A stretch of DNA of 64,000 nucleotides, taken from the NCBI GenBank assembly GCA_977016875.1, contig CDRNST010000165.1:372001-436000 (forward strand), given 5' to 3'. The notes beneath the pieces were generated by a model. The model was not told the DNA's origin, did not search any database, and saw only the letters and a program-made list of their open reading frames with translations. The stretch comes from Pavona decussata. Its lineage: Eukaryota. Position numbers and translations under genes: made by a program. Positions 26,611-43,723 of the stretch are shown here, in pieces (the stretch's first letter is position 1; each line of letters starts with the position of its first letter).

Positions 26611-27759
26611 TTAGTGTGTTGTTTTTGTGGCTAAACAATCTCTTTGGCAGACTTCTTGTAGTTCAGCAGGTAACCTTTTCTCAACTTCAAGCTATTTTGT
26701 TTCCTTTTTATGCATTCCAAATAAAAATGGGCTGCTTCAGAGGGATCGAAGTTACTAAAGTATTTCTTGGAAACAGCTCCAATTACTAGCTTTCCACATT
26801 CCTTTATTAAGTTTGTCCAAGAAAAGGCCCAAATGTTTTGTCTTGACATAGAGGTACCAAGGTGGTAAACGGCACAGGGGTGGGGTGAGGCAGGGCACAT
26901 CCAGGGGATTTAACAGCAATGTTAATTGCTTGTTATGAGGACTTTTGGCCATTTAGTGGACTTGCTAACAAATTTTCAATGACGCTGAGTCTTGATGATC
27001 TTTTGGCTTGTTGTGCAATCCTTCCTTCTCAAAAAGACATCTGCTAAAACAATGGGTGATTGGCATAGTCTAATCAGTGTGCACTTCCAAATCCTGGAAG
27101 TGCACTTTGGACTTGGCCAATAACACTTTGTACAGACAAACACTTCGCTTGAGGAAAGAGCATCTAAATCTGTATCCAAGACATTTTTGATCTGGCCTGG
27201 TATTTTCACAGAACTCTAGCTGAATACTTGTGCTCTTGCAGTAACAGAGGAAACAAATTTATTTGGGAGTTAAAATTATCCATATATAAAGTAAGGATTT
27301 CTATTTAAATAAGGAATTTGTGAGGAAATTAATTGCCTGGTGAGCCAAAGGCATGTGCAAGGGAGAGGCTACAAATGCCCTGCACTGGTGTATTTGAACG
27401 GTTAATCTCTTGTTATGCCCAGGCCCGTTCCCACTTCTGCGATTAACAGTGACAGGTGCAAAATGTGATCCATAATAAACAAGCTGCCTGGTTAAATATA
27501 AAACCTTTAATGAGGTTCACTAACTTAACATATTAATATCACAAACACTGATGATTTGGAGTTGTACAAACACCTGAACAAAAAAATCTGTCATTTTCCC
27601 CAGAATGAAAAATACTCTTTTTGATTAAGACACCTCAACAATAATTATTATTGTAAGCATTTCTTGTTCAATTTATCTTGTTGCATCTATGAAAAATGCC
27701 TTGGGATCAACCTTGTTCCCAACGTCTCTTACAAACTGGAGTGAACCTTGCCCCAGTCT

Positions 27760-30700
27760 TTAGCTGCCACGGTATGTGGAGTAGGAGAATGGACTTAGCA
27801 GGAGTGGTACATGGTAGTGTTGAGATGGATCACTGATCAGAAATACGATCTGAAAAGTGACAAATAAAACAATAAATAAGTAAATAAATAGGTAAAAAAT
27901 AAAAGGTAAGGTTGCACTTGGGGTCAAGGCAGCACATACGGCGGGAGTCTGGTTTATGTTACAGAGAGCAACTAAGAGTATTCCTACTCCCCTTGGGGTG
28001 CTAGTCCATTGCAGGGTTACCCTCGGCATTATGTCACAAGTAGTCATTTTATACACCTGGATGGGGTAAGACAAAGTGGAGAAAGACAACAGCAATTCCA
28101 TCATTTTTCAAGACATCTATTTCTTTTTGGGCAGACTTGCATATTTGCGAAGTGCTCCAGTTATTAGCAGATTAGATGCATGTGAGATCCAATGGACAAA
28201 GGTTCATGTCCTGGCATATGGTTCTCAATGGCAAACAATTTGAGCTCAAGAATTTTTCTATAATCAGTTTGCATTTAAGTGGTGGAACTTTGATCCAGAA
28301 AATTAATAGGAGTTGCAAGTTACTTTTCAAGGTAATCAACAAGAAAATCGCTATTGATAAACATGTACATAACACAGATTTCTGAGCTCCTAATGAATTG
28401 GTCAACATGCTAGCTCGCACAGTGCTGTATTAGACTCTGCAACATCTATTTATAAATGGGTGCCAGCAAATTTGTGGTAAGGCTAATAAAATATTCTAAA
28501 GGAAGGGGTTGGACTTAGATCCCTTGATGGATGGATAGGTAAATGATTATCCTCTTAGTAGCATTAGTTTGAAACTACCATTGATATTACACTACTATAA
28601 TCACTATACACACAAAAAAAGTGAAAATTTTTGGTGAAAAAGTCTATCCAAAAAAATTCTCTTACATTGTAAGGCAGGACAATTTAATCAACAGTGGAAA
28701 GGAGACACAAGTCAAAGTGTTAATTAATTTTTTATTTTCAGAGAGTAATTTACAACAACATAATTACCTCAACATAGGGGTAAAAGAATGAAGAAACTCC
28801 AGTCTCCTTGAAATAAGCTTCAGTCTCAAATCTGATCATGTATTTACCAGGTATAAACTGCTCTTGAGTCAGTAGGTCAGGAATTCTACCATCAACATTG
28901 GTGACTCTACACAAATCAATTATACAAAGATTCTATTCAACAAAGTGAAATTCTACCAGTTTGAAATTGAAGTTCTTCTTAGAGCGGTTTTCAATCGAGT
29001 ATCGAAAGTAATTTTGCATTTGCTTTGGTTTTGCTTTACTAGACTCTATGATCGGTTGGTAAAGTTCGCGCCAGTTTCTCAACCAACGGGAAGCCAAACC
29101 AAAACCAGTTGTGCTTGGTCGCAAGTGTTTTCCTCTCTTGACGCAGGTTACATGTATTTGCTTCGATTTCTGATTGGCTGATTGTGCTGTTTTCATCTGT
29201 TGTGATTGGCCAGAGAAATTACTTTGGTTTTGGTTTTACAACACTCAATTGAAAACCGCTCTATCAAGTGCATTACATAACATATCTTAAATCACGTTAG
29301 TTTACAGATAAACACAAACTTTGTTCATAGTACAGTTCTATATTGGTTGCTGCTATAATTATGATTCATAGAAGTAAAAGTTAAGTATTAGTTCAGTGCT
29401 GAGGTTCAGAACTTGCATGTTATTTAAAAACAATGCGGTAAATAAGACTGGATATTGTCAAAATATTTCTGGTGTGTTGATTGTAGCCAATGACATGTGA
29501 GATCTTGTAGCAAAAACAAACTGTAAAGTATCTCTGTCAACAGTTTTATTGAACCCAGACAAGCAGGATATTGATTACAATTGATTGCAAGACTATCGTA
29601 ATCCCAGGCATGTGTTCTATTTTGAAGAATCTGCAAGAATATTAGAATAACTTGACTAACAAAACAGAATTTCAATCTTACCCTGATGTGATATGTTTCC
29701 ACATGCGACTGTCAGGTCGCATTTCTTCAAAGTACAGCTGTATCTGCAGGTTCCTGGCTGGTATACCACGTGCTGTGTCCAGCACATGAGTAGTGAGGGG
29801 GCTTCCAGGCATTGGGCTTTTATCAGCGGCACTGTGCTGTCGATAGTAGAAAGTAAGTTAATTCTCACTGTGAGCCTTGCTAGATGTGATCAATCATAAA
29901 CAAACTGTTTAATAGAAGATGTTGGAGTAACTGACTGGTGAACTCTATTGTTACGACCAAAGAAAAAGTTACCAACAAGGACGTCCACCGATGTCAATGT
30001 TTTCATTTGACATGGGATGGTATCATCGTTGCCATATAATCACATGTGCTGATCTTGTTCCTGACTAACAAGTCTTGCATGAATTTACTAAATTATGCAG
30101 CATTGGGCAATCATAGGTTTAGAAAACACATGGTGCTGTTGCATTTCTATGAAAGATTGCATGCAATGGTGAAATGAACTACCAAAGGCAGTTCTTAAGT
30201 TGTGTTTACCGGTAACTTGTTTCAAGTGTCCTCTACAATTTTGAAATAAAATAAATAAATAAATAAATAAATAACTATTTAAATTAAGTATCAATGTAAT
30301 TAAGCACGGAGCACTAATTGGGGACACTTTCCAGATTGAAATGGAATTTGGAAATGTTGGTTTTTGGGGAGAGGGGAAAACCTGAGGTCAGGACCCAGAG
30401 AAAAACCTCTTGGAGCAAGGACGAGATTACCAACAACAAACTCAACCCACATATGACGCCAAGTCCAGGAATTGAACCAAGATGGTTGGCTTTTAATTAC
30501 TCAGCAATAAAATAACTAACTGAAACAAAAAAAACATCAACAACAACAGGATGCAATGTCTGGTGTCTTCTTTACTCCTAGATTCAGTGAATTTTGAGAA
30601 AAATCAGCCCTATCATCTTTGCTTGAGCTTACCATGGGGTGCGATGACGAAGAAGCCATGGTTGGTGCTGTTTGACAATAAACAACTCTTGAACTGGTGT

Positions 30701-33700
30701 GCCCTGGATAGTTCATTCCGGCGCGGCCTGCTGATGATGTATGAGGCAAGCTGTAATTACCATCAGTAGTTTTAAATGATGATTGAAGTGGACTACGTAA
30801 ATTATTTGGAGGTGCTTGAAGCTGACTTAACCTGTAGGCTGCAAGGGGTGACTGCAGTCCCCTCTGGCTAGAATAGTATTGCATTCCAAGCAAAGAGAAT
30901 TCTGTTGGACTTGATGGCTTTAGCTCTGTTTGCTTCTCACTGAAGGCATGGTTGTTCCCTTGCGAAGAAGAGGTTCTGATACTGCTTAGATTTAAAGCCT
31001 GAGACTGAGAATGGCTTGAATTAATAATGATCTTTGAGAGATGAGCTTGTTCTCTGCTCTGAACTGCGCTGAATGCCGATGAGCCTAGTTGGATGTCACT
31101 GCATCTTGAGGTTACTGTTTCCTCTGGACTTGATGCCCGATACTTTCCATTAACTGACACCATGGTAGGACGCTCGTCGCAAGGCTCTCGAGGGAGGATG
31201 GGTTGATATCTCTGGGGAGCTGGCTGAGATACTAGAGTAGTAATGAGTGGATAATCGTCCACAAGGCTGTCAAGAATTGCCACGTATGTGCCTCTAATGC
31301 AGTTATTGGTATAAATCCTGGACAGACGTGCAAGTTTAGACATGTTAGTCATCATCTCTCCCAGTGAATTGTGACCAACCGCTGCGTTTTCATACCAGAT
31401 AGGATCATCTTCACAAGCATGATGTTTGAAGGAAGCTTTGGGTCTCTGCCACAGGTACAGATTCATGGGATTCAGCTTAGAAAGGTACTTGAGAAATGAG
31501 GCAACGGGACATCTTGGATTACCTGATGAGGAAGGGGTCAAATAATTATTGCCAATGACAAGGAAATGTGCAGTTTTTCTAATCTTGAATATTTTTCTAT
31601 GAAGTATTTTTGTGTCAAAAGATCTTTAGTAAGGTTCTTTGTTCTGATTTTCTGAATTTTCCTTCTCCAAGTTGACACTCAAAAATAAAGGAGAAGTATG
31701 CAAGTACTGCTGCAAGTAACTGACTACGACACAACTGACAATAAAATATATCCGTCAGCCTCGAAAAACAGATCAAATATAAGTCTTAAGATTAAGCTCC
31801 AACTTTCGCGTATTTAATTCTTGGACTAGGAAATCCACTCGACAAAACGCCGGCCTTTTTGGATTTGTAAAAAGAAACTGAACAAATTTGAAGATCAAGC
31901 TTATCCTTTCTTCCCACTTTGGTAAAAGAAAAAAACTAAAAAAAAAAACCCAGCAACTTCAACTATCACTTGAAAAACTATTGAAGTAAAAGCCCGTCCA
32001 TTTACCTAGTTCCTTCACGTTGTAAATAACATCGGATGATTTCTTGAAAAGTCATTTTTCCTTTCAATTTCAAATTGTCGCTGTTCACAATAGATGACAA
32101 AATATTTCGCGCGCTTTCTAAAATATACGTACATAATTTACCTGGTTTTTCGTACATCCGCGGGCATTTTCCTTCGGCAAAAACGTTTTCACAGTGCGAG
32201 GGGTTCGGATAAATGTATTTCAAACCAGTGCTTGAGTTATATCCGATGAGAAAAGTGTCCCGAGTTTGTTCTCTCACATTGCTCCGGTTACGCTTTCCTG
32301 GTAAGTACATGAGAAGGTCGAAAAACACTTTTCGTTGAAGACCATCGGCGCTGAATGGCGAGAGCACATCACAGAGATACAGCTTCTTCAAATCATCAGG
32401 CCCGATGTCGGAACGGTTTACTTCGCCTTTCCCCTGTTTGTTCAGTTTTATGACCTGGGCTTTGAATATTTTGTTGGACTCGGTAAATTCAGGGTCGTTT
32501 CTGATGTCTATATTCCTCTGTTGTGACTGTAAGTACCGATGAATTCCAAAACGTATGCTCCCCAAGGCAGAGGATTTGTAATAATCTCCATTCTTTTTAC
32601 GCGCTTCGACGTAAAATTTACGCAAAAGGTCATTCAACGCTTGCTTGTCCAGGTTCTCAAAGTTAACATCCATACTTTTCTCTTCCATGTAGTCTCGGAG
32701 AATTTTCACGGCATTTTTAGTCGCTCGCCATGTGTTTTCACTGCATGAACGGTGCTCCAACAATCGTTGAATATCTTCCTCCGAGGTTTCGCCAAAACGC
32801 GGCAATGAATTTTCATCTGTTGGACTTCCAAGCGAACTTCCTTCGCTATCGGGATGGTTTTCAGAGTTTTCAAAAGTTTCAACCTTAACCTCGGGCATAA
32901 GAACAACTGAACTTGCTTCTTCGTCCATTGTCGTGTAAAGACTGGAGTCAACGATTCGTGCTCGTTATAAGACTTCAACACACTTTGAAACCAGGCAATA
33001 TCGTATGATGTCACTGTGCACTGGTTCTTTCGTGCGTTATTTATAGGACAGACAACTTACCACAAACCAAACCATGCAACATGTACACTGATGTACCGCT
33101 TTAAAGATCTCTTAAGGAGAGAAAAGAAAGTTTGTGTGTATGGCTTAAAATACATTTAGCCCATTTTTTTAGAAGGTTAAACCAAAAAACCAGTGAAAGT
33201 TGCCTGTCGTAAGAATCGACAAATTACATTAGTTACCAACTGGTCCGATATCGCCAAATACTTGAAAAACTTATTTTTGTGGTGGACGAATACAGAAGCT
33301 GACATCAAACGCTTACTTTTTAAGTCGAGTGCAAATTGATATGGGTCGTTTTCCGGAGTATATCTCCATAGGGTGAGCTCATTTGATTACGACATTGGTT
33401 TCATAAATTTTCGTACGGACTGATTTTACAGCAAAGTGATGTACATAACCAACAAACTTTACAATGGTTGACCAGTTATCACACACCATCAAGCAACGGC
33501 AAGTTGTCAGTATTTGGCAAAGAAGAACCTTTCAAAACGATAACATTCTATAATATATTGTATTCCGTTATTATCGCCTATTATGTCTCCATCGGTTATA
33601 TTACTGCACATAGAACTGTCGTATCATATCTTTCTGTAATTAAATAGAAAAGTAGACAAGCGACTGTGGATGCAGTGTATTAGCATATACAACACTTAAA

Positions 33701-36700
33701 CAGTATGGCAAAGGTTTTCAGAAAACCGATATTGGCTTCAAGAAATCACAGTAAGGCTTTGCCGGGCAATTTGTTCAATATAATAAACGATATATTTTTA
33801 ACGAAATGATAAAACCCTCTATTGTAGTCACAGTAAGTTCCAAACGTATTCTAAATGTTGCGTTTACAATTCAACGCCTTCAGTTTCTGACAATCAAGAG
33901 TTTCCATTTTTAAGTGAACGTTTGAACAAATACGGGTTTTTGACGGTTTACGGACATGGGGGTCAAATAATGTTATTGTCCAAAAGCAATTAAAAGCTAA
34001 TACAGTGTGTGTGATATATTATACTTTCCAAGGGATAAGAGTACTGATATTGCATTTGAAAAAAATACGCTGTTATACACAAAGAGATGAACGGAAAATC
34101 TCTGAAGAAAAATGCTTTTTGGATTTTGCCCGTCCGCCGTTTACTACAAGATTGGAACAGATGCATTTCTGTACAAAACTTGGATATCCAGTGATCAGAG
34201 TAATATCTGCTACAGGGATCTCTTCAGTATCGTTTCAAATACCCTTGAAACAGCACTGGAAGCGAATTTAAATGATGCCATTCTGACCAACTTGCAGGCG
34301 CCCCTGTTTCACAGAAAAAGAAAGAAAGCCAATACTTGCACAGCTGCCATGCCTTTTTCAAATATCATTCCAGAATTTGTAAAGAATTTTCTGCGGAGGT
34401 AGAATAAATCCCTCCCAATTTAAATATATTGCTCTCACATATATCTGCCCCTGGCTAAAAACAGTGATCTGCAATATTTTTAAGGGAGTCAGCAGATCTA
34501 GACATGAAGAGCTAAATGAAGTGGAACAGCATTAGTTTATTGAGAGATATTTTTGGCAAAGGAACGGGGTAATACTGCTACGTTCGCTAAAGGTTACCAA
34601 CATGAGCCACAGAACGTCCAAGTTATGCGTTTACAACACATTAGCGGATAAGAAATGAGTGTTCATTAAAAACAAATCAAGTCATTGAGTATTTAAATGT
34701 TTTTTGTCAGAGCGGTACAGATGACTTCATAGAATCGAAGCTAGAAGCATTTAATTGTGATTTAATTTTTCAGGGCCCGCCTCTTGCACATGATAGTTAC
34801 ACCTCTGTATGGTCTGTTAACACATTTCACCCAAGTGTGACTTAAGGTCACCATTATTGTGACATGAAAAACAAACTAATAACGTTTTTTCTCTAATCTG
34901 CATAAAGTTAATCGTAGTTTACATGTAATATTCTTTTCCACTCTTCAGTACTACGCCAGTTACAAAATTCTTTATCAAACAATATTAAAAATATATTTTG
35001 CCTCTAACTCTGCATTTCCCATGGCACGTAACGCTTGAAGGCTATAAAAATACACCGTTTATCCTTCACGCTTCCCTTGTTTTGGCCACGTTTCAACATC
35101 TTTTTTGATCACAAATTCTCTGCTCTGTAGGTTATTTATAAACGATATTATAAATAATGGGAACAAACTTTGGACCTTAATAAATATTCCGATATCACTG
35201 GAGTTTCAGTTGTATTGCATGCTTCCTTTTGACTTATCTTGATCAAACTCTTTTCTAGTTATTGATTTTCAACTTTTCTCTTGGACATACATTGTTTTGT
35301 GGCATATGACGCTTTGCTGAGTAAAATTCGCTCATCCGTACGTATGGTCTACCGCTTTCATTTTAAGGGATAACGACACAGCTCTAAATGTGATCTCCTG
35401 AGTCATCGTGATAATTTTATGTGCAGTGAGTTGACCCCTAAATAAGGGACACTTCATTTACCAGTTGGGGTGGGCTGGTGTATTTTTTTGGAGGGGGAGG
35501 GGGTATGCAAAAAATGGCTTTAAGGCTAGGGGATGCGGGAGTCACCTAAAAATAAAGGAGCCTACTATTAATAATTCAATGTAAAGTACAGCCCATATTT
35601 CTGTTCTTTTCCTTTTTCTTTGGGATGGGGATGAGGAAATCATCTTAAAAATAATGGAATTCTAAGGGAGGGAGGTGGGGGGGGGGGGTGAGTAAAAATT
35701 GTTTTGGATGGACAAGAATAAATAAAACCATAAAGTAAGCGGATTATGTTTACATAATGGGGAGCAGGGGAGAGGTGGGTGGGAGGGGGGTTTCAGGGGA
35801 ACAGGGGGAGAGAAAAATATTCTTTTTTCTCTGAGACCTACTTTCTCTAACAAAAAAGGGTTGGTCCTCTGTATTCCCATGGATTTTTATTTTTATAGGG
35901 AAGGATACTTTCCCCCATACCCATTAAATTCCAGTTTTTGGCCTGCATAATCGCCAAATGATTCTAGTAACAAACTATATTCTTCCAATCTCTTGCAGTG
36001 ATTAATTTAGTGCATACAATGCATTTTTATAAAGAAATTTTTTTCAAAGATTCTTGTATTTCATGAGTAGATATTTTAAATCTTACTCAAAATTTCAAAG
36101 TCAGGGACTCAATAAGGCATTTTGCGGGGGTTGATGGGTGTAGTTCTCACCAAATCTTCTTAAATTTCCTATTCAGTGTGTTTGGTTAGGAAGCCAGCCT
36201 TCTTGGGTGTTTGACCTGAAACCCCTCTCTTAACTGGAACAGTGACTGAATACTGTAAAAGCCCTATTGAGTGCCCTCTCTAACAACTTCCCCATTTGAA
36301 AATCAGATTTTTTAGTTACCGCCCTGTCTCTTTCTTTAATCCCCACCTTTCCATGTTAGAAAGCACACACAGAAAAACAAACTTCAAAACTCAGGTGGTC
36401 AGCTTGTCTATATGAAACTGGGTCATCAATCTGCAGAAGTGTCGAGGTAAGAATGACTTTGTGATACACTAACTTTATGCCAAAAATCAGTACCTTGTTG
36501 CAATTTGGGGATGAGATACTGTTAAATGCTCCAATGACTCCATAGAAATCCTTCTCGCTTTGCCATAGTTCCAAAATATGTTTAAAACTTAGGCAAAATC
36601 ATTTTTGAGTCATTGGAGCATAACAGTGCTAATATCTTGCAACAAGACACTGACTTTTGGCAAGTAGGCATTTTTCATTGTGCTCTTTCCGAACATCTTA

Positions 36701-38254
36701 ACAAATCCCATAATTTTCAAAAATTAAAAGATTTATGATGTCACACTTTAGGATGATCCTATTACTACAATAACATGTAGGGGAAGACTGGATTACATTT
36801 TACTTGCCAGGAATCTTGTTACTCTCTTTTGTTCAATTCCAGATGGAAAGGTGGACAGGGATCATAAATACAAGCTGTATGTGTATGCAGGTAGTGTGGC
36901 AATACCCAAACTCACTTCACACCAATGGGACCAGAAAGAGTCACCGTCCAGTGTCCAATAATTATAACAGTAGTTACCTCTTTTCTACAGTGAATTTAAT
37001 GGCAGTGTTAGCATCTGGTTTTACATAAAAGTACTTAACAGAGGGTAGCTATGGTTGCCAAGCTGATTTTGTTTTGAGTTCTTTGAACATAGAGCATACT
37101 GGTGAGAGCACTCGCCTCTCACCAAATGATGTGGCCTGGGTTTGATTCTTGGACTCCATATCTTATGTGGGTTGAGTTTTTTGTTGGCTCTCACCCTTGC
37201 TAGGAGAGGTTTTGCTCCAGGTATTCTGGTTTCCCCTCTCCTCAAAAACCAACATCTCCCAATTCCAATTCAATCTGGATGATTGTCAAACACTTTATCA
37301 TGAGCCTCCGGCTCAGAAGGTTGTACAAGCATTCCCAGTGTTATTGACATTTAATCATTTACTTACTTATATACCCAAAAAGACAGAGTAGTATATAAAC
37401 AATGAAACTCGACTAGCAACTCAAATTATCTACAAATTAATACCATGTGACCAGAGTTCCCTTTGATCCCCCTAGAAAAATGGAGAAGAGGAAGGAAAAG
37501 AGTCTCTTCCTCTTCCTAATTTTCTAGGAAGGTTGAAAGAAACTCTGCCTGCTGGGTAAAAAATTAATGGACAGGATAATTAAACAAGATTTTGGTAATA
37601 AGCTTGATGTGTTAAACACACCTACCTACCACTACAAATGGCAAGTGTTCCTCAGGCATAACAATAGTTATTTATTCATTGACTTTGTGGGGCTGGTGTG
37701 AACGCGGGCAGGGGGTACTCCCTTACATAAGCTCTAAGCCACCCCAAGGGGTATGGTTTTTGATCTGTTTTGGTCTGAAAATGGATATTGATTTTAACAA
37801 TTTTGGTCTGAAGTCTGAAAGCAGGTATGTATTTTTTTTAGGCCAGGATTTGGTCTGAAATAGGGTCAAGGGTTGGAGGATCGCACACCCCCACCTTGTC
37901 CTTCCAGGTTGACTTTCAAGGAGAACCCCACCCCACCCCCCTTCCTCAGCTCCCCTGCAAGCTGCTCAACCACCTAGCAGATAAAATTATCATCTTTCTT
38001 CAAAGATTGGCAGTGGATCAAACGAGCCAGCTCGATTATTATATGGATGAAAGTGGCCCTGTATTCTGTAGTTTAGCCGAAATGTCGTTTATGCTGACGT
38101 TTTAGTTGCAATCGATTGCGCTTTTTCCATCAGGGTATAGAGTTTACAACTCAGATGTAATGGCAGTCGCGTGTCAATGATCTAAATGATATGGGTCACT
38201 AACCTTCTCAGGAGTTATATGGTTACGTATACTTGATAACCTTGCGTTACTCAT
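27760..38254 (-). CDS. URAH: 5-hydroxyisourate hydrolase (transthyretin-related protein), 144 aa with N-terminal PTS2. Exons 38254-38204, 29836-29682, 28906-28768, 27849-27760
   Basis: Spliced translation: [17 protein letters not shown]|[52 protein letters not shown]|[46 protein letters not shown]|[29 protein letters not shown]. Family signatures [17 protein letters not shown] and terminal YRGS are all present; introns are GT-AG with phases 0/2/0. Exons 2-4 are near certain. Exon 1 is assigned from its RLxxIRxHI PTS2 motif and phase-0 donor. Confidence 0.9.
27900..28090 (-). mobile_element. SINE fragment in URAH intron 3
   Basis: GTGCTAGTCCATTGCAGGGTTACCC..ATTTTATACACCTGG is shared with the 12345-12910 and 63248-64000 copies. 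Confidence 0.65.
28980..29263. mobile_element. MITE in URAH intron 2 (partial copies at ~53445-53718, ~53880-54020, ~49975-50130)
   Basis: TIRs TAGAGCGGTTTTCAAT / ATTGAAAACCGCTCTA, probable TA TSD. Internal GATTGG and TTTTCCCGCGCT motifs recur in the other copies. Confidence 0.85.
30246..30480 (-). mobile_element. tRNA-derived SINE (second family)
   Basis: Reverse complement of 37100-37370. B-box-like GGTTCAATTCC, ATGTGGGTTGAGTTTGTTGTTGG core, TTCCCCTCTCCCCAAAAACCAACATTTCCAAATTCC and a (TTTA)n tail. Confidence 0.8.
30537..32928 (-). CDS. DUF3504 / Crypton tyrosine-recombinase-derived protein (KCTD1/KIAA1958/ZMYM/QRICH1-like domain), 590 aa. Exons 32928-32142, 31522-30537
   Basis: Two long ORFs joined by a phase-1 GT-AG intron (RMYEKPG|[18 protein letters not shown]). 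Motifs [73 protein letters not shown] and YTNNCIRGT are typical of this family. Confidence 0.85.
33012..33045 (-). promoter_or_regulatory. Putative TATA/Inr core promoter of the nested DUF3504 gene
   Basis: TATAAAT begins at 33045 (minus). An Inr-like ACAGT has its A at 33015, 30 nt downstream and 87 nt before the ATG. Confidence 0.5.
37100..37370 (+). mobile_element. tRNA-derived SINE
   Basis: TGGTGAGAGCACTCGCCTCTCACCA (tRNA-like head), degenerate B box GGTTTGATTC, conserved core shared with 30246-30480, (TTAC)n tail. Confidence 0.8.
37708..37942. mobile_element. Degenerate copy of the CCCGGG/GGGGTACTCC MITE family
   Basis: GGGGGTACTCCCT..CCCCAAGGGGTATGGTTTTTGA..TTTTGGTCTGAAA matches 12369-12815; termini eroded. 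Confidence 0.7.
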
Positions 38255-38459
38255 ATAAACAATTCGTTATTTCCTGGGGCACTTAATCACAAAACAAGAG
38301 TAAATCTGAACCACCTTTCCGAAGACCAACGACCGTCCAGGAAAAAATGCGAATTTTCTGAATTTTCTAATTTCTAATGTTACACATTGATCAGCGGTCT
38401 ACTTAAAAAAGTTACGAGACAGCGAACATTGGGTGTGCGGTTTCTGCCTTAAAATAAAG
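38255..38459. promoter_or_regulatory. Bidirectional promoter between URAH (-) and ALKBH8 (+)
   Basis: Only 205 bp separate the two divergent start codons (38254 and 38460). Depends on the URAH exon-1 assignment. Confidence 0.75.
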
Positions 38460-41400
38460 ATGGCGACTTCGAATGCGATGAAATCTTGTGCCACGAAATT
38501 GACCAAAACAGAGAAGAAGGCCTTAAGAAAACAAACGAAACTTGTGAACAGTCTTCGTAGAAATAACGCCGATCCAGCCACGGTCTCAGAAACTCCAACT
38601 CGGCACTTGATGATTGGAAATGGAGGATTGATGTGTGGCGTGGAGCGGAGTCAAATAATGAGTTTGTTTCAGAAATTTGGCAACATCGAACGCATTTTAA
38701 TGTTTCCCGGAAGATCGTTTTCGTTCATTTCGTTTGAAGACGTCAATGAATCAGTGAGAGCCATGGATAAGGTCAATGGACGTGTTTTGGATTGTCCTTC
38801 AGAATTCCCCAGATCGGATGTTAGGTTTTATCTTTCCTTCCTCGCAAGTGTACCAGATGAGGTTACTGTTGAGAATCTGGATAAACCGGCCGGCCTTATT
38901 CTGGTGGAAGAGTTTGTGAGTGAAGCAGAAGAGGAAGAACTGATCCAAGCTCTAGGATGGGGCAATTATGACAATGAGAATGAAATTCAAGGGACAGGTA
39001 TTGAATCATGACCATACAGCCGAAGCATCCAGCACAGAAGTTTACAGAAATATAAAATGGGCCCTTTGCAGCTAACAGTCACATGGTACAAAAAATCTAT
39101 CATGCTGGAGAACAAGCTATGTGCTGGGACATCCAAAACAAAGAAAATTCAAGTTTGACTGGATGAAGTTGCTTTATTTTGGATGTACATGTCCCAGCAT
39201 GCAATTTGCTCTCCAGGATGGTAGATTCTGTATGATGTGACCGTTAGCTCCAAAGGGCTCATTATATAATAAAGTTAACCAGCTGCAATAAATATATGCC
39301 TAACAGGAAAATCTAAGTGATAATTTGTGATAGTGCACTATGACAAATAGGCGAAATTTTGGTCTGGACATTTCCCCAGAATGTCATTTTCTGTCTGTCC
39401 AGCTTGTTTTAGAGTCTATCAAATGGGCTGTTTAGACCAGCTGGTGCATTTAGATTTCCAAACTGAATAATTAAGTCACAGAAAATTTCAGCAAACCAAT
39501 AATATTGTATCTCCCAAATTTCTGAGATGCTGGTGGCTGTCTGAAAATCTTCGCATTTGAAACATCATTTTTGTCCCTCTGGGCCGAGTTGTTCAAAACC
39601 TGATTAAGCTAATCCTGGGTTAACGTGAGCTTTGATCTGAGTATATTTACTAATCCATAAGGTTTTCTCCAAAAGATTTTGCCCCTCAGTTTTGCCTTAG
39701 ACATTCCTTTACCATTGGATTAAAATGAGCCTTTAAAATCATCTTTAATAAGTGAGTTGAAAACCTCGGTTAACTTTTAATCGTGGATTAGCGTTAATCA
39801 ACTTTCGAACAAACGGGCCCTGGAGACAAAAGGAATTATGATTTCCAGTGTTATGACACTTTGTGGTGACATTTCGCAAAATAAAACACATGTGTCGCCA
39901 CAATATTAAATTTGAAAATCTGAGGTGATTCAGGCCTTTGGGAGAGATATTACTGAAAGAAACTACTGGGTTCCACTAATATATATATAGGTGACCTTTT
40001 TGTTCGCTTAGACAATTTCTTTCCAGGAAATCTGCTACATTGTATGGAAACATTTGCATGTGCATACCTGCCAAGTTGCCCAGATTATTTGGGAGCCTTC
40101 TGGATTTGGACTGCAACTCCTGGTTTTCCAGACATAACCCAATCTCCTTAAGTCTCTCTTAAGTCGTTTTTTTTTTCATTAAAAAAAAAATGTAAATTTG
40201 TGCTAAGTGGCCCTCTTATTTCAGTGAAATGGGACTATACCAAATGTCTGAATCCCACTTTAAAGAGTTCATCATGTCCAAATGTTATTTTTGATTAAAG
40301 ATTTAAGTACATTTTGTCTTCCTTGCAGCCAATCAGCAGCTTCGCCACAGGAGAGTCAAACATTTTGGCTATGAGTTTTTGTATGGAACAAACAATGTGG
40401 ACAAATCAAATCCCTTACAAGATGGCATCCCCAGTGTTTGTGACACATTGTTGGAATGGATCCTAATGCATGTGTCATTCAAACCTGATCAAATGACTGT
40501 TAATGAGTACAAACCAGGCCAGGGTATGTTCTAATGACAGTTTGGGATTTTTCATACAGCAGTACAGAAGTTGGGATACATGTATATGGTGTGGTGTATT
40601 GTATTATAATCAAATTGCACTGCGTTGTATTGTATAACATAGTGCTGTATTATATTTATTTATTTATTTATTTATAAACATTATTTAAACAGAAATTCCA
40701 ATTCAGCGTAGCTGGTTTAAATGGAGATCTGTATAAAATAATAAGAATAAATAATCAAATATAGAAATAAAAGCAAAAGTCATTCAAAGAGTTCATGAAG
40801 GTGAGAAATTAACTAACTAAAGGTGATTTAGATGTTTCTTGACTCTCAGTTTAAAACTAGTGAGAGACAGATCGTGACGTAAGTTACGAGGAAGAGTGTT
40901 CCAGGATTTGGCGGCATTGTACTTAAAAGATGTTTGTGTTTTATTTTGTTGTATGTAACAATAACAAAATGCCTAAGTCTCTTTTTTCTCATAAAGAAAG
41001 CACAGACAAAAAAACAACAACATTCTTTTGGTAAACTGCTATTGTTGTTGGTTTTTTTCTGAAGGCATTCCTCCTCATGTGGACACTCACTCAGCTTTTG
41101 AGGATGGGATTGCTTCAGTCAGCCTTGGATCACAGGTATAAGTCATTTATTACTAAATAAATCATTGTTTCTTTTTCCATCTTCTACAAACTCAGTAGGT
41201 GCTGGCGTGGGGTGTATGTTGTTGTTCTATGTGTTTGTAATCAAGTCACCGCTTTTCCTGGCCACTGTTTTCTGATCTTGTTCTCCTCAATCTACTTTTG
41301 TGCCTTTTTATTCTGAAAAATCTTTCTCGTCCAGCAGGCCTGCTCAATCATTCTTTTCGTTTGTGTCATGCTCAGGTTACCATGGAATTCCGTCATCCTG

Positions 41401-43723
41401 ATGGCCGTCATGTGCCAATTGTTTTACCCAGGAGAAGTCTGCTTGTAATGACAGGAGAGAGTAGATATCTTTGGAGTCATGGGTAAGCTGCATGAAGCTC
41501 TCCTGAGTCAATTTTTAAATATTAAAACTATTTATTTTTCCACGAGTGTGCATTAGAAAAAAGATGATTGATAGCCAACGAGGTGCTAAGCACTGAGTTT
41601 GCTTATGATAATGATCCCATACCATATTCACACAAGTGTGGGTGGAAGATTTTTTTTAATGATGAACAACCAAGAAATATTGCTAGATCTGATTTCATTT
41701 TGCAAGAAAGACCAGAAGACGATATAATGGTCTCTGTTTCTTGGGCATGGTGTAATGGCTGATATCCAATGCCGCTAAGCCAATCAAAACTCTGGATTTC
41801 CGCATTATCCAATGATCCAACTTATAATAACCTATTTCCAGGTTAAGAAACAATACTTAGAGCCCTATAGATACTCTTTCATAATTTATGCATAATTTAA
41901 TTTAATTTGCTTTGATTTCAGTATAACGCCTCGAAAATTTGATATCGTACAGAACATCAACAGCACATCAAACAAGAGGGCCAGTGGCGCTAAATGCTCC
42001 AAGGTACATGAACCTGACAGTGAAGAGAGCACCTCAATAAAAGGAGCCGGACTGGGCACAACACTGTTTGAAAGACAAACCAGGATATCGCTTACACTGC
42101 GCAGGATTCGCCATGCTCCATGTAACTGTGCTTTTCCATCTCAATGCGATTCCCGAAAGGGTAACAAAAGTAAATCTCAAGTACCACCGTCATCTGATGT
42201 TCCGGAGTCTGAAGAAGAAGCTGAAAAACTGGAAAAACTTCACGTACATGAAGTATATGAGAAGATAGCCCCACATTTTAGCGGTACACGCCACAGCCCG
42301 TGGCCGAGGATCGCAGAGTTTTTGCGGGACCAGCCCGTGGGTAGCCTCATGGCTGATGTCGGATGCGGGAACGGAAAATATCTCGGGATAAACAACAGTG
42401 TATTCAGTACTGGCTCCGACAGAAGTTTCAACCTTGCTGCTATCTGTAGAGAACGAGGATTTTCTGTGATTGTTTGCGATATCTTGTCTCTACCATACAG
42501 GTAATGAGAGCGAAAGTACGCTGAAGTTAACAAGACACCAGACAACGCACAGTTTTCTAATGACTAGTGTGAAACTAAGAGTGAACCCTTCAGTTAAATG
42601 TACCATTCGGAATTTAAAGGGAACCTTCACTCTTACAGCAAATTGAAGTTTTTTCGAAACGTCTAAATTCTAAATTTGATTTCAAAAAGTGAAATAACGT
42701 AACAAGTTTACACATTTGTATGTGATTATCGCCCGTTTTCGGCCTAAAATTTCCGAGGTCCAACATTTTTATGACGTCAAATGGTGCCGCTTTTGTCAGG
42801 AAGCAAAGTTTTTTTTGTGAAATGGAACTAAGTGCGGGAAGACTTTTGTAAGCAGCCACGGTTGGGTTTGGTTTTGTTCCCGATTTTTACCCAGTTATTG
42901 TTCACCAAGGCTAACCTGCTAGCAGAGCGTTTCTTTCTTGCAAGTTTTTTAGCATTTACAAAGTTGTTTGCGTCTCTGGTATTTCGAGTAGTTGGCTTGT
43001 TTAGCGTATACAAACAGAAAAGCCTCTGTTAGCAGGGTACACCAAAGCAAGCACTGAAGATTAGTGTCGACAGTTGGTAGCAAACTTAAATTGTTTATTT
43101 GTTTCAGATCCGATGCATTTGACGTCTGTCTTTGTATTGCCGTCCTTCACCATCTCTCAACGGCCGAGCGACGTCTGGCAGGTCTGAGGGAGCTGGTTCG
43201 AGTTACGCGGCCGGGTGGACTGGTGCTAGTGTATGTGTGGGCCTTGGAGCAAGAAATCGAAAAAGTCAAAAAGAAAAATTTGAAAGAAGTTGACTTCACG
43301 GGAACTAATGAAGATGACAGTGTAACAGACGGAAATATCGAAGACGAGTCCTTGAAAAATATTAAAGAGACTAAAGAGACTTTTCCAAGCAAATCTGAAA
43401 ACCCGAGTGATCACAGTAAGCCAAGGTTGCGTGTGAATGCCAGCAGGGAATCCTTTGAGCAACAAGACTTGTTTGTACCTTGGAAATACAGCGGACCAGG
43501 AAAACAACAGGAGAAACAGAGAAAAGTAAACGGACAAAAGGGTGACGTCACTGAAGGTCTCGTGTTTCATAGGTATTATCACGTGTTTCAAGATGGCGAA
43601 CTTGTGGAACTTTGCAGCCAGCTCAGTGACGTAACAGTCGAGAAACAGTATTACGATAAAGGAAACTGGTGTGTTATACTCAGGAAAAAACCTGTGATGG
43701 CAGGGAATTGGACGTACAACTGA
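38460..43723 (+). CDS. ALKBH8: tRNA wobble-uridine methyltransferase/dioxygenase ALKBH8, 701 aa. Exons 38460-38997, 40329-40523, 41065-41135, 41376-41482, 41922-42500, 43108-43723
   Basis: RRM ([16 protein letters not shown]), AlkB domain ([56 protein letters not shown]), Zn motif [11 protein letters not shown] and Trm9-type MTase ([46 protein letters not shown]). Phases consistent (2106 nt). Confidence 0.96.
39059..39260. mobile_element. Palindromic MITE in ALKBH8 intron 1
   Basis: GCCCTTTGCAGCTAACAGTCACAT..GGGACATCCAAAA / TTTTGGATG..GTCCC..ATGTGACCGTTAGCTCCAAAGGGC form imperfect inverted arms. Confidence 0.75.
39582..39819. mobile_element. Harbinger-like MITE with CTG TSD
   Basis: CTG|GGCCGAGTTGTTCAAAA..GATTAAGCTAATCC / GGATTAGCGTTAATC..TTTCGAACAAACGGGCC|CTG. 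Confidence 0.75.
40655..40933 (-). mobile_element. 5'-truncated LINE (CR1/L2-group) 3' end
   Basis: Minus-strand translation [38 protein letters not shown] matches the WNxLP...FK C-terminus of CR1/L2-type ORF2, followed by a 3'UTR and (TAAA)n tail. Confidence 0.75.

Follow-up and report, generated by a model that had tools for sequence, protein, structure and literature searches.

RNA-supported fusion of a Crypton-derived DUF3504 module to the catalytic exons of URAH in the coral Pavona decussata

Results

The region examined is a stretch of 64,000 nucleotides of the genome of the coral Pavona decussata (assembly GCA_977016875.1, contig CDRNST010000165.1, positions 372,001 to 436,000), hereafter the window, in which coordinates are counted from the first letter. 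It carries, on the minus strand, the urate-pathway gene URAH, encoding a HIUase, and, within the first intron of this gene, an open reading frame (ORF) of the DUF3504 family. A preliminary description, made from the sequence alone, had taken them for two separate genes, one nested in the other, the URAH pre-mRNA skipping the splice and poly(A) sites of the nested unit. Splice junctions, reading frame, conservation and gene order show instead that the exons of the DUF3504 unit are spliced in frame to URAH exon 2, and that a fusion mRNA is formed. The whole is read, with a probability of about 80%, as a single compound locus, in which the catalytic exons of URAH are shared by two alternative 5' modules, rather than as a gene hosting an independent guest.

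Splicing of the DUF3504 module to URAH exon 2

RNA contigs of four runs, from four studies, were mapped on positions 27500-33400; the alternative first exon at 38254-38204, discussed below, lies outside this range. Three coral runs (X1, X5 and X6) cover the genes, and the fourth, a metatranscriptome, covers repeats only. A joint connecting 30633 to 29836, GT..AG on the minus strand, was found in contigs of all three coral runs, and thus in three studies. Its donor, CCCATG/gtaagc (a slash marks the splice site, here and below), is located inside the DUF3504 ORF, 32 codons (31 residues and the stop) before the ORF end. A start of URAH transcripts at an exon between 29837 and 30536, with no junction from 38204, had been named in the preliminary description as telling against its reading; this is in essence what was found, exon 2 receiving an exon from inside the supposed nested gene.

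A single contig of 2279 nt (X6, record 19) aligns to 32963-32138, 31518-30633, 29836-29682, 28906-28768 and 27849-27558. The coding parts of the five exons measure 787, 890, 155, 139 and 90 nt, with two split codons (G/GT and GG/A) and no stops. Since the junction between 30633 and 29836 is phase 0 on both sides, one reading frame runs from the ATG at 32928 to the URAH stop, for a total of 686 aa; the frame was checked by arithmetic and by exon-wise translation.

Within the module, exon A (32928-32142, 262 codons plus 1 nt, present in RNA contigs) is separated from exon B (31522-30633, ending in phase 0 at the fusion donor) by a phase 1 intron (32141-31523; split codon G/GT, donor CCAG/gtaaat). 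The corresponding joint was placed at 31518/32138 in X5 and X6, and fits equally four places to the right, at 31522/32142, where CT..AC on the plus strand equals GT..AG on the minus strand. The junction from 32142 to 31522, which had been proposed as a check of the preliminary description, is therefore present in RNA.

The coordinates (32928-30537), strand and intron earlier assigned to the DUF3504 unit all stand; its description as an intact, self-contained gene of 590 aa does not, because the RNA leaves the ORF at 30633. The read-through tail (30632-30537, minus strand), coding for 31 residues and the stop, is removed from the fusion mRNA as part of an intron: the RNA joint skips 796 nt between module and URAH (30632-29837), which hold a repeat copy at about 30258-30481. 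The 31 residues share 38% identity with P0140, find no match in P0150 or P0312, and are conserved only in a near-identical genome. Conservation of the sequence before the donor and its lack after it indicate that the tail of the 590-aa ORF behaves as an intron.

These data bear on the alternative in which URAH intron 1 hosts, in the DUF3504 unit, an independent gene of 590 aa that terminates its own transcripts, while URAH starts at the exon at 38254-38204 and skips the unit, the fusion joint being a minor by-product. Such a gene would agree with the ORF being intact down to the stop at 30537, with the AATTAAA-like motif that follows this stop, with a DUF3504-only contig (P0312/L030) from a related coral, in which an intron is retained, and with the good attestation of the short isoform in relatives. 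It is nevertheless highly unlikely, given that the 30633-29836 joint is present in all three coral RNA sets covering the genes, that contig depth is zero at 29864-30257, that the tail is not conserved, that L030 lacks a poly(A) tail, and that five annotated genomes, from corals to anemones, have fusion models agreeing in phase and position. The route taken by the transcripts, the unconserved tail and the missing poly(A) tail of L030 also speak against the terminal exon and poly(A) site of its own with which the unit had been credited.

The catalytic exons

URAH exon 2 (29836-29682), exon 3 (28906-28768) and the coding part of exon 4 (27849-27760), all on the minus strand, each exceed separately the PF00576 cut-off of 25.3 bits, and cover positions 1-29, 37-82 and 83-109 of the Pfam profile, respectively. 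Both introns show GT..AG joints in the RNA contigs (28906/29682 and 27849/28768), and the earlier placement of exons 2 to 4 within 29836-27760 is confirmed. The 3' untranslated region (UTR) extends to about 27547, RNA contigs ending between 27547 and 27626. Exon 3 has its sole genome-wide match at this position, and URAH is a single-copy gene by sequence search. Exon 2, which starts in phase 0 with HSAADKSP, is the common acceptor exon (joint 29836/30633), in frame with both upstream modules; an in-frame stop (29860-29858) immediately precedes its acceptor.

Residues typical of HIUases are found in the window exons, namely the His of SPLTTHVLD, the conserved Arg motif and a C-terminal YRGS (exon 4 ends with YSTYRGS and the stop). 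An orthologue of the fusion protein from another coral sample, P0306, matches PF00576 over positions 1-109 of 109 with 130 bits, and its HIUase part aligns over the full length with zebrafish HIUase (2H1X). The predicted domain is of the HIUase, not the transthyretin, type. As the YRGS at the HIUase C-terminus belongs to the active site (PMC7710942), additions to the enzyme must be N-terminal, in agreement with the architecture seen in the window.

Structure and origin of the DUF3504 module

Exon A encodes a QRICH1-type N-terminal domain (PF25561, 32 bits, above cut-off) and the first half of a recombinase-derived domain. Exon B continues with PF12012, followed by a Ser/Gln-rich linker; taken alone, it scores 23 bits against this profile, below cut-off, which the Nematostella orthologue exceeds with 35.8 bits.

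RNA contigs spanning exon A and its 5' UTR (32138-33105, 32767-33199 and 32138-32963) show that the UTR is contiguous with the exon and reaches about 33200-33400; in-frame stops were found upstream of the ATG at 32928. In a relative, the fusion transcript (L029) has a 5' UTR colinear with window positions 33400-32929. Over its first 93 nt, the relative's transcript gave no match in 29837-38460 above shuffled controls, and there is accordingly no sign of the exon at 38254-38204 being joined to the DUF3504 module. A transcription start site cannot be read from contigs; because the 5' UTR is contiguous up to about 33200-33400 and unlinked to that exon, and in-frame stops precede the ATG, the module most likely has a separate start, and a promoter of its own in intron 1, upstream of about 33200-33400. 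In X1 only, low-depth contigs lie over the DUF3504 intron (31507-32167) and over 33180-33400, and none over the URAH introns; they could correspond to intron retention, to a longer 5' UTR, or to nascent RNA from an upstream promoter.

Within the 602-Mb genome the DUF3504 unit occurs once, the next-best matches being 39-40% identical, and does not belong to a set of near-identical copies, a point on which the preliminary description had made its own reading depend. Its closest genomic relatives are intronless Crypton-like ORFs of 421/442 aa, present in several dozen copies and characterized by YTNHSIRAT...SGHRNESSIRSY motifs. Similarity to these intact ORFs amounts to 39-40% identity over 215 residues and 53% over 84 residues (E about 1e-37). 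The module reads YTNNCIRGT in place of YTNHSIRAT, with loss of the His and retention of the Arg, and the GH..Y segment containing the catalytic Tyr is absent, its place being taken by the linker. On these two losses it is classified as a domesticated, catalytically dead derivative. Its descent from Crypton-type tyrosine recombinases, already put forward in the preliminary description, is upheld by the homology to intact ORFs and the lost catalytic residues. Vertebrate DUF3504 genes have likewise lost their catalytic residues (PMC3212892).

The intronless ORFs (L002-L010, e.g. L002:907-2172, minus strand) keep the HxxR, GH and Y motifs, and most have no internal stops. From their sequences, they look like a young, possibly active Crypton-type family of the Pavona decussata genome.

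Conservation in corals and sea anemones

The same fusion is known, from gene models or assembled sequences, for at least 6 other hexacorallian species or samples. The 690-aa P0306, from a contig of a JGI coral metatranscriptome, combines QRICH1, DUF3504 and Transthyretin domains, and the contig maps exon by exon to the window; a Logan RNA contig from another coral (P0122/L021) has the same junction. NCBI models of the fusion, which surfaced only in a length-aware word search, are available for Montipora foliosa (685 aa), Acropora muricata (683 aa), Actinia tenebrosa (586 aa), Actinostola sp. (619 aa) and Nematostella vectensis (591 aa, XP_032228739.1, with an older model, A7SSH4). A search of the Nematostella fusion against a representative library returned 150 proteins of the DUF3504 family, and the HIUase domain was found in none of the 10 of them scanned with Pfam, mainly two-stretch matches; beyond Hexacorallia, this search thus contributed no further fusion.

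The five-exon plan and the position of the module intron (EKKG/NPRCP) are the same in Nematostella as in the window. The Nematostella junction, ...FPSL/SSQAPSPMAKSPLTTH, is phase 0 on both sides and lies eight codons before a conserved Met, exactly as does the window junction (...SHPM/); this Met precedes SPLTTH in all species compared. The module is single-copy and syntenic, and its exon A is 95-96% identical among coral genera (P0306, P0329 and P0330), which suggests a gene kept by purifying selection rather than a mobile copy. Identity of exon B to other corals, up to the donor, is between 66 and 82%, and the linker differs in length and sequence from corals to Nematostella and Actinia.

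The module lies on the same strand as URAH, between the exon at 38254-38204 and the catalytic exons, as the preliminary description had placed it. Beyond that exon follows ALKBH8, and the order ALKBH8, alternative first exon, DUF3504 module, URAH is kept in Actinia, where the DUF3504-HIUase gene is found 3.1 kb downstream of the first exon, and in Nematostella. By the agreement of the window with these two sea anemones, the order is common to corals and sea anemones.

Conservation is what decides against the fusion transcript being real but functionless, a read-through splicing product (transcription-induced chimera) beside the working products, a short HIUase and possibly a truncated DUF3504 protein. 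Chimeric transcripts are in general frequent between adjacent genes of the same strand, and several vertebrate "cadherin-1-like" models (P0334-P0341), which carry a HIUase domain and may be read-through of neighbouring genes, resemble annotation artefacts of this kind. For the coral locus, such an origin is most improbable: the phase 0/phase 0 junction keeps its position with respect to the HIUase Met in corals, Nematostella and Actinia alike, despite a changing linker; neither a stop nor a terminal exon of the module's own is conserved; and the conservation of exon A among coral genera equals or exceeds that of the enzyme exons.

The alternative first exon and its ALKBH8 neighbour

The other 5' module of the proposed compound locus is a coding exon of 51 nt, or 17 codons (38254-38204, minus strand), which contains the nonapeptide RLSSIRNHI, resembling a type 2 peroxisomal targeting signal (PTS2), and ends with a phase 0 donor, AAG/gttagt. 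A motif scan of the minus strand within 29837-38600 found it to carry the only PTS2-like motif, in accordance with its earlier description as the sole PTS2-like phase 0 exon. Alignment with other species extends its 5' UTR to 38268 or beyond.

Transcripts of related corals (L023-L028) align to the window from 38268/38250 to 38204, and then continue at 29838/29836. Short proteins of related corals (P0003, P0008, P0121 and P0126, the last on 13 contigs) start with the PTS2-like exon and proceed with the HIUase. Given how the relatives' transcripts map, the exon and its junction are orthologous to an exon and a junction in use, and the exon is 80-88% identical in protein to those used by the relatives. 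Two related-coral transcripts, P0127 and P0126, differ by an extra Gln at the boundary of exons 1 and 2 (LEKQHCS vs LEKHCS), which points to tandem NAGNAG acceptors for URAH exon 2 in that relative.

For Pavona decussata itself, use of the exon is predicted from the transcripts of related corals. The exon could conversely be a relic in this species, in which case the fusion mRNA, or else initiation at the internal Met at 29812, would be the sole source of URAH protein. Among the transcripts of this species, none was seen to include 38254-38204; a search for URAH products of 63-200 aa gave PTS2-type proteins of relatives only, none identical to this species, and no 144-aa product of it was among the matches. 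Contigs of X1 and X6 cross the 29836 acceptor unbranched, and the Met before SPLTTH is conserved in all species. A relic is still unlikely, as the exon keeps its ATG, an open frame, the PTS2-like motif and a consensus donor, resembles the exons used by relatives to the degree just given, and has a position beside ALKBH8 that is conserved in anemones. Moreover, the X5 contigs break exactly at the 29836 acceptor, with a k-1 overlap, a branching of the graph that fits a second upstream form.

The first coding exon of the ALKBH8-like gene, matching RRM_1, is located at 38460-39011 on the plus strand, and exons of Nematostella ALKBH8 match the window at 38436-43258 on the same strand. The ATGs of ALKBH8 and of the PTS2-like exon are divergent and 205 bp apart. 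This head-to-head arrangement, with ATGs about 90-205 bp apart, is found in coral, Actinia (L031:6701-6789) and Nematostella (L022:3449-3555), and the conserved pair probably shares a bidirectional promoter.

In Actinia, the PTS2-like exon (MQSGISGSGKRLAKISSHLEKK/gtaggt) lies at most 90 nt from the ALKBH8 ATG, and its nonapeptide, RLAKISSHL, is a canonical RLx5HL. In Nematostella the exon (MIRRTEKFSQHLASK/gtgaga, L022:3555-3599) is about 100 bp from the ALKBH8 ATG. Another Nematostella candidate, at L022:6015, was rejected, no in-phase donor being present after it.

Repeats

Very high depth at 29030-29265, in URAH intron 2, was recorded in all four RNA sets. The segment is an interspersed repeat of about 235 bp, with more than 2000 candidate copies and about 90% identity. 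It was therefore rejected as an RNA gene, and Rfam gave no match to it or elsewhere in 27000-39000.

Inverted copies of another repeat at 30330-30481 and 37136-37279, 79-92% complementary, flank the DUF3504 module in intron 1. If transcription began at the PTS2-like exon, pairing of the two copies in the pre-mRNA could place the module in a loop; as the repeat is common, the arrangement may also be due to chance.

Discussion

Evidence against the compound locus

Several points weigh against reading the locus as catalytic exons shared by two 5' modules. The run type, RNA, is a guess; the X1, X5 and X6 contigs are nevertheless taken as spliced RNA, because four GT..AG introns are removed in them. 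Contigs prove neither that all junctions lie on one molecule nor any ratio of isoforms, and contig depths were not used for isoform ranking. The junction from 38204 to 29836 is known from transcripts of related corals, with none from Pavona decussata, and the unbranched passage of X1 and X6 contigs across the acceptor may mean that the PTS2-type form is rare or absent in these samples. The intron-retaining P0312/L030 contig allows for a stand-alone DUF3504 product.

The remaining objections concern the targeting signal. The PTS2 consensus attributed to Petriv and colleagues in 2004 is said to be R-[LVIQ]-x-x-[LVIH]-[LSGA]-x-[HQ]-[LA]. RLSSIRNHI matches it at positions 1, 2, 5 and 8, and departs from it with R at 6 and I at 9. 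The Nematostella nonapeptide, RTEKFSQHL, is non-canonical, with Thr at position 2, and the signal may have been weakened or lost in this species, although exon and donor persist. PTS2 is cited also in the form RLx5HL (PMC7710942). In COS-7 cells, the PTS2 of zebrafish Uraha did not bring about the targeting of a reporter (PMC8919083), and a nonapeptide motif by itself is on this account no proof of import.

Proposed mechanism

In the proposed mechanism, the first module (38254-38204) would be spliced across 8.4 kb to 29836, for a 144-aa HIUase of the usual animal type. The second module, inside intron 1 and with its own 5' UTR, uses, as seen in RNA, the exon B donor at 30633 and the same acceptor at 29836, for a predicted 686-aa DUF3504-linker-HIUase protein. 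The 144-aa form would carry the PTS2-like signal, and the fusion would be without one at its N-terminus. The promoter used would then determine whether a small enzyme, possibly peroxisomal, or a large fusion outside the peroxisome is made. The localisation switch imagined in the preliminary description is kept in this altered form, as a choice between a tagged enzyme and an untagged fusion; its version based on a nested gene is abandoned.

By analogy with the solved structures of the HIUase/transthyretin family, the HIUase domain of the fusion would be expected to tetramerise. It might thereby provide an oligomerising, possibly still enzymatic, C-terminal body to a recombinase-derived DNA- or chromatin-binding head, a counterpart to the BTB domain in KCTD1 isoform b, and a fusion tetramer would present four such heads. 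A more speculative proposal, regarded as doubtful, is that the HIUase body acts as oligomerisation scaffold of the dead recombinase head, mimicking a tetrameric synapse, that promoter choice toggles the product between an enzyme of purine catabolism in peroxisomes and a chromatin or transcription factor in the nucleus, and that mixed tetramers might co-assemble. If true, urate and nitrogen metabolism would be coupled to gene regulation, a relevant matter in symbiotic cnidarians, and the HIUase fold would have a second independent non-enzymatic role, beside vertebrate transthyretin.

The results correct the annotation of the locus, in that an apparently complete nested gene becomes an alternative 5' module of its host gene, and they lengthen the short list of known Crypton domestications by one independent case, from a cnidarian. 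As URAH is single-copy, the locus offers a clean test of alternative promoters splitting an enzyme between compartments or functions. It also raises the question of which role a urate-pathway enzyme fused to a chromatin-type module may have in animals whose handling of purines and nitrogen is bound up with symbiosis.

Comparison with known systems

No paper pairing DUF3504 with transthyretin, and no description of the fusion, was found in a literature search, and the Crypton paper PMC3212892 names neither HIUase nor transthyretin. The fusion is present in public annotation as "uncharacterized protein" or "TTL-like". The latter name refers to plant and algal TTL, or allantoin synthase, in which an OHCU decarboxylase is joined to a HIUase. 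As in TTL, the coral HIUase is the C-terminal domain of a longer protein; unlike in TTL, the N-terminal partner is recombinase-derived and PF09349 is missing. The Actinia fusion (P0331), named "uric acid degradation bifunctional protein TTL-like" and devoid of an OHCU decarboxylase, is hence a misnomer.

Animal HIUase with an N-terminal PTS2 was described by Ramazzina et al. 2006, according to the citing passage of PMC8919083. The coral short isoform follows this plan, with an RLx5H[LI]-type nonapeptide and a complete HIUase domain ending in YRGS. It differs in that the nonapeptide is non-canonical at two positions, and that the catalytic exons serve also a recombinase-derived N-terminal extension of 559 residues.

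At the domain level, the module resembles the domesticated Crypton genes QRICH1, ZMYM2-4 and WOC of vertebrates, having PF25561 followed by DUF3504, with the catalytic Tyr and His lost. Unlike in these proteins, no MYM zinc fingers or CARD were detected in the coral protein, an enzyme domain is C-terminal, and the second conserved Arg (IRG) seems to be retained.

An intron of bird ATF7IP holds a Crypton-like sequence with an intact recombinase site, predicted to be spliced into the host mRNA, no fusion transcript being known (PMC3212892). The coral locus is similar in having a Crypton-derived ORF inside a host intron, and different in that RNA shows the fusion and the site for recombination is dead.

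The closest parallel is vertebrate KCTD1 isoform b, which originated from a Crypton that landed upstream of a BTB gene and exists as a longer DUF3504-BTB isoform beside the short one (Kojima and Jurka 2011, PMC3212892). In both cases a dead Crypton-derived DUF3504 stands upstream of an older gene body, a longer isoform with N-terminal DUF3504 accompanies a short isoform, and the host part comes from a family known to oligomerise, as judged for the coral from HIUase family structures. The route of capture is still readable in the coral, from insertion in intron 1, through acquisition of a donor, to use of the host acceptor, and closely parallels that of KCTD1b. The coral case is an independent event in Hexacorallia, with the metabolic enzyme HIUase, not a BTB protein, as host, and its module has an intron of its own and a QRICH1-type N-terminal domain. 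It lies, moreover, in intron 1, downstream of a targeting-signal exon, so that the two coral isoforms, unlike those of KCTD1, differ also in the signal.

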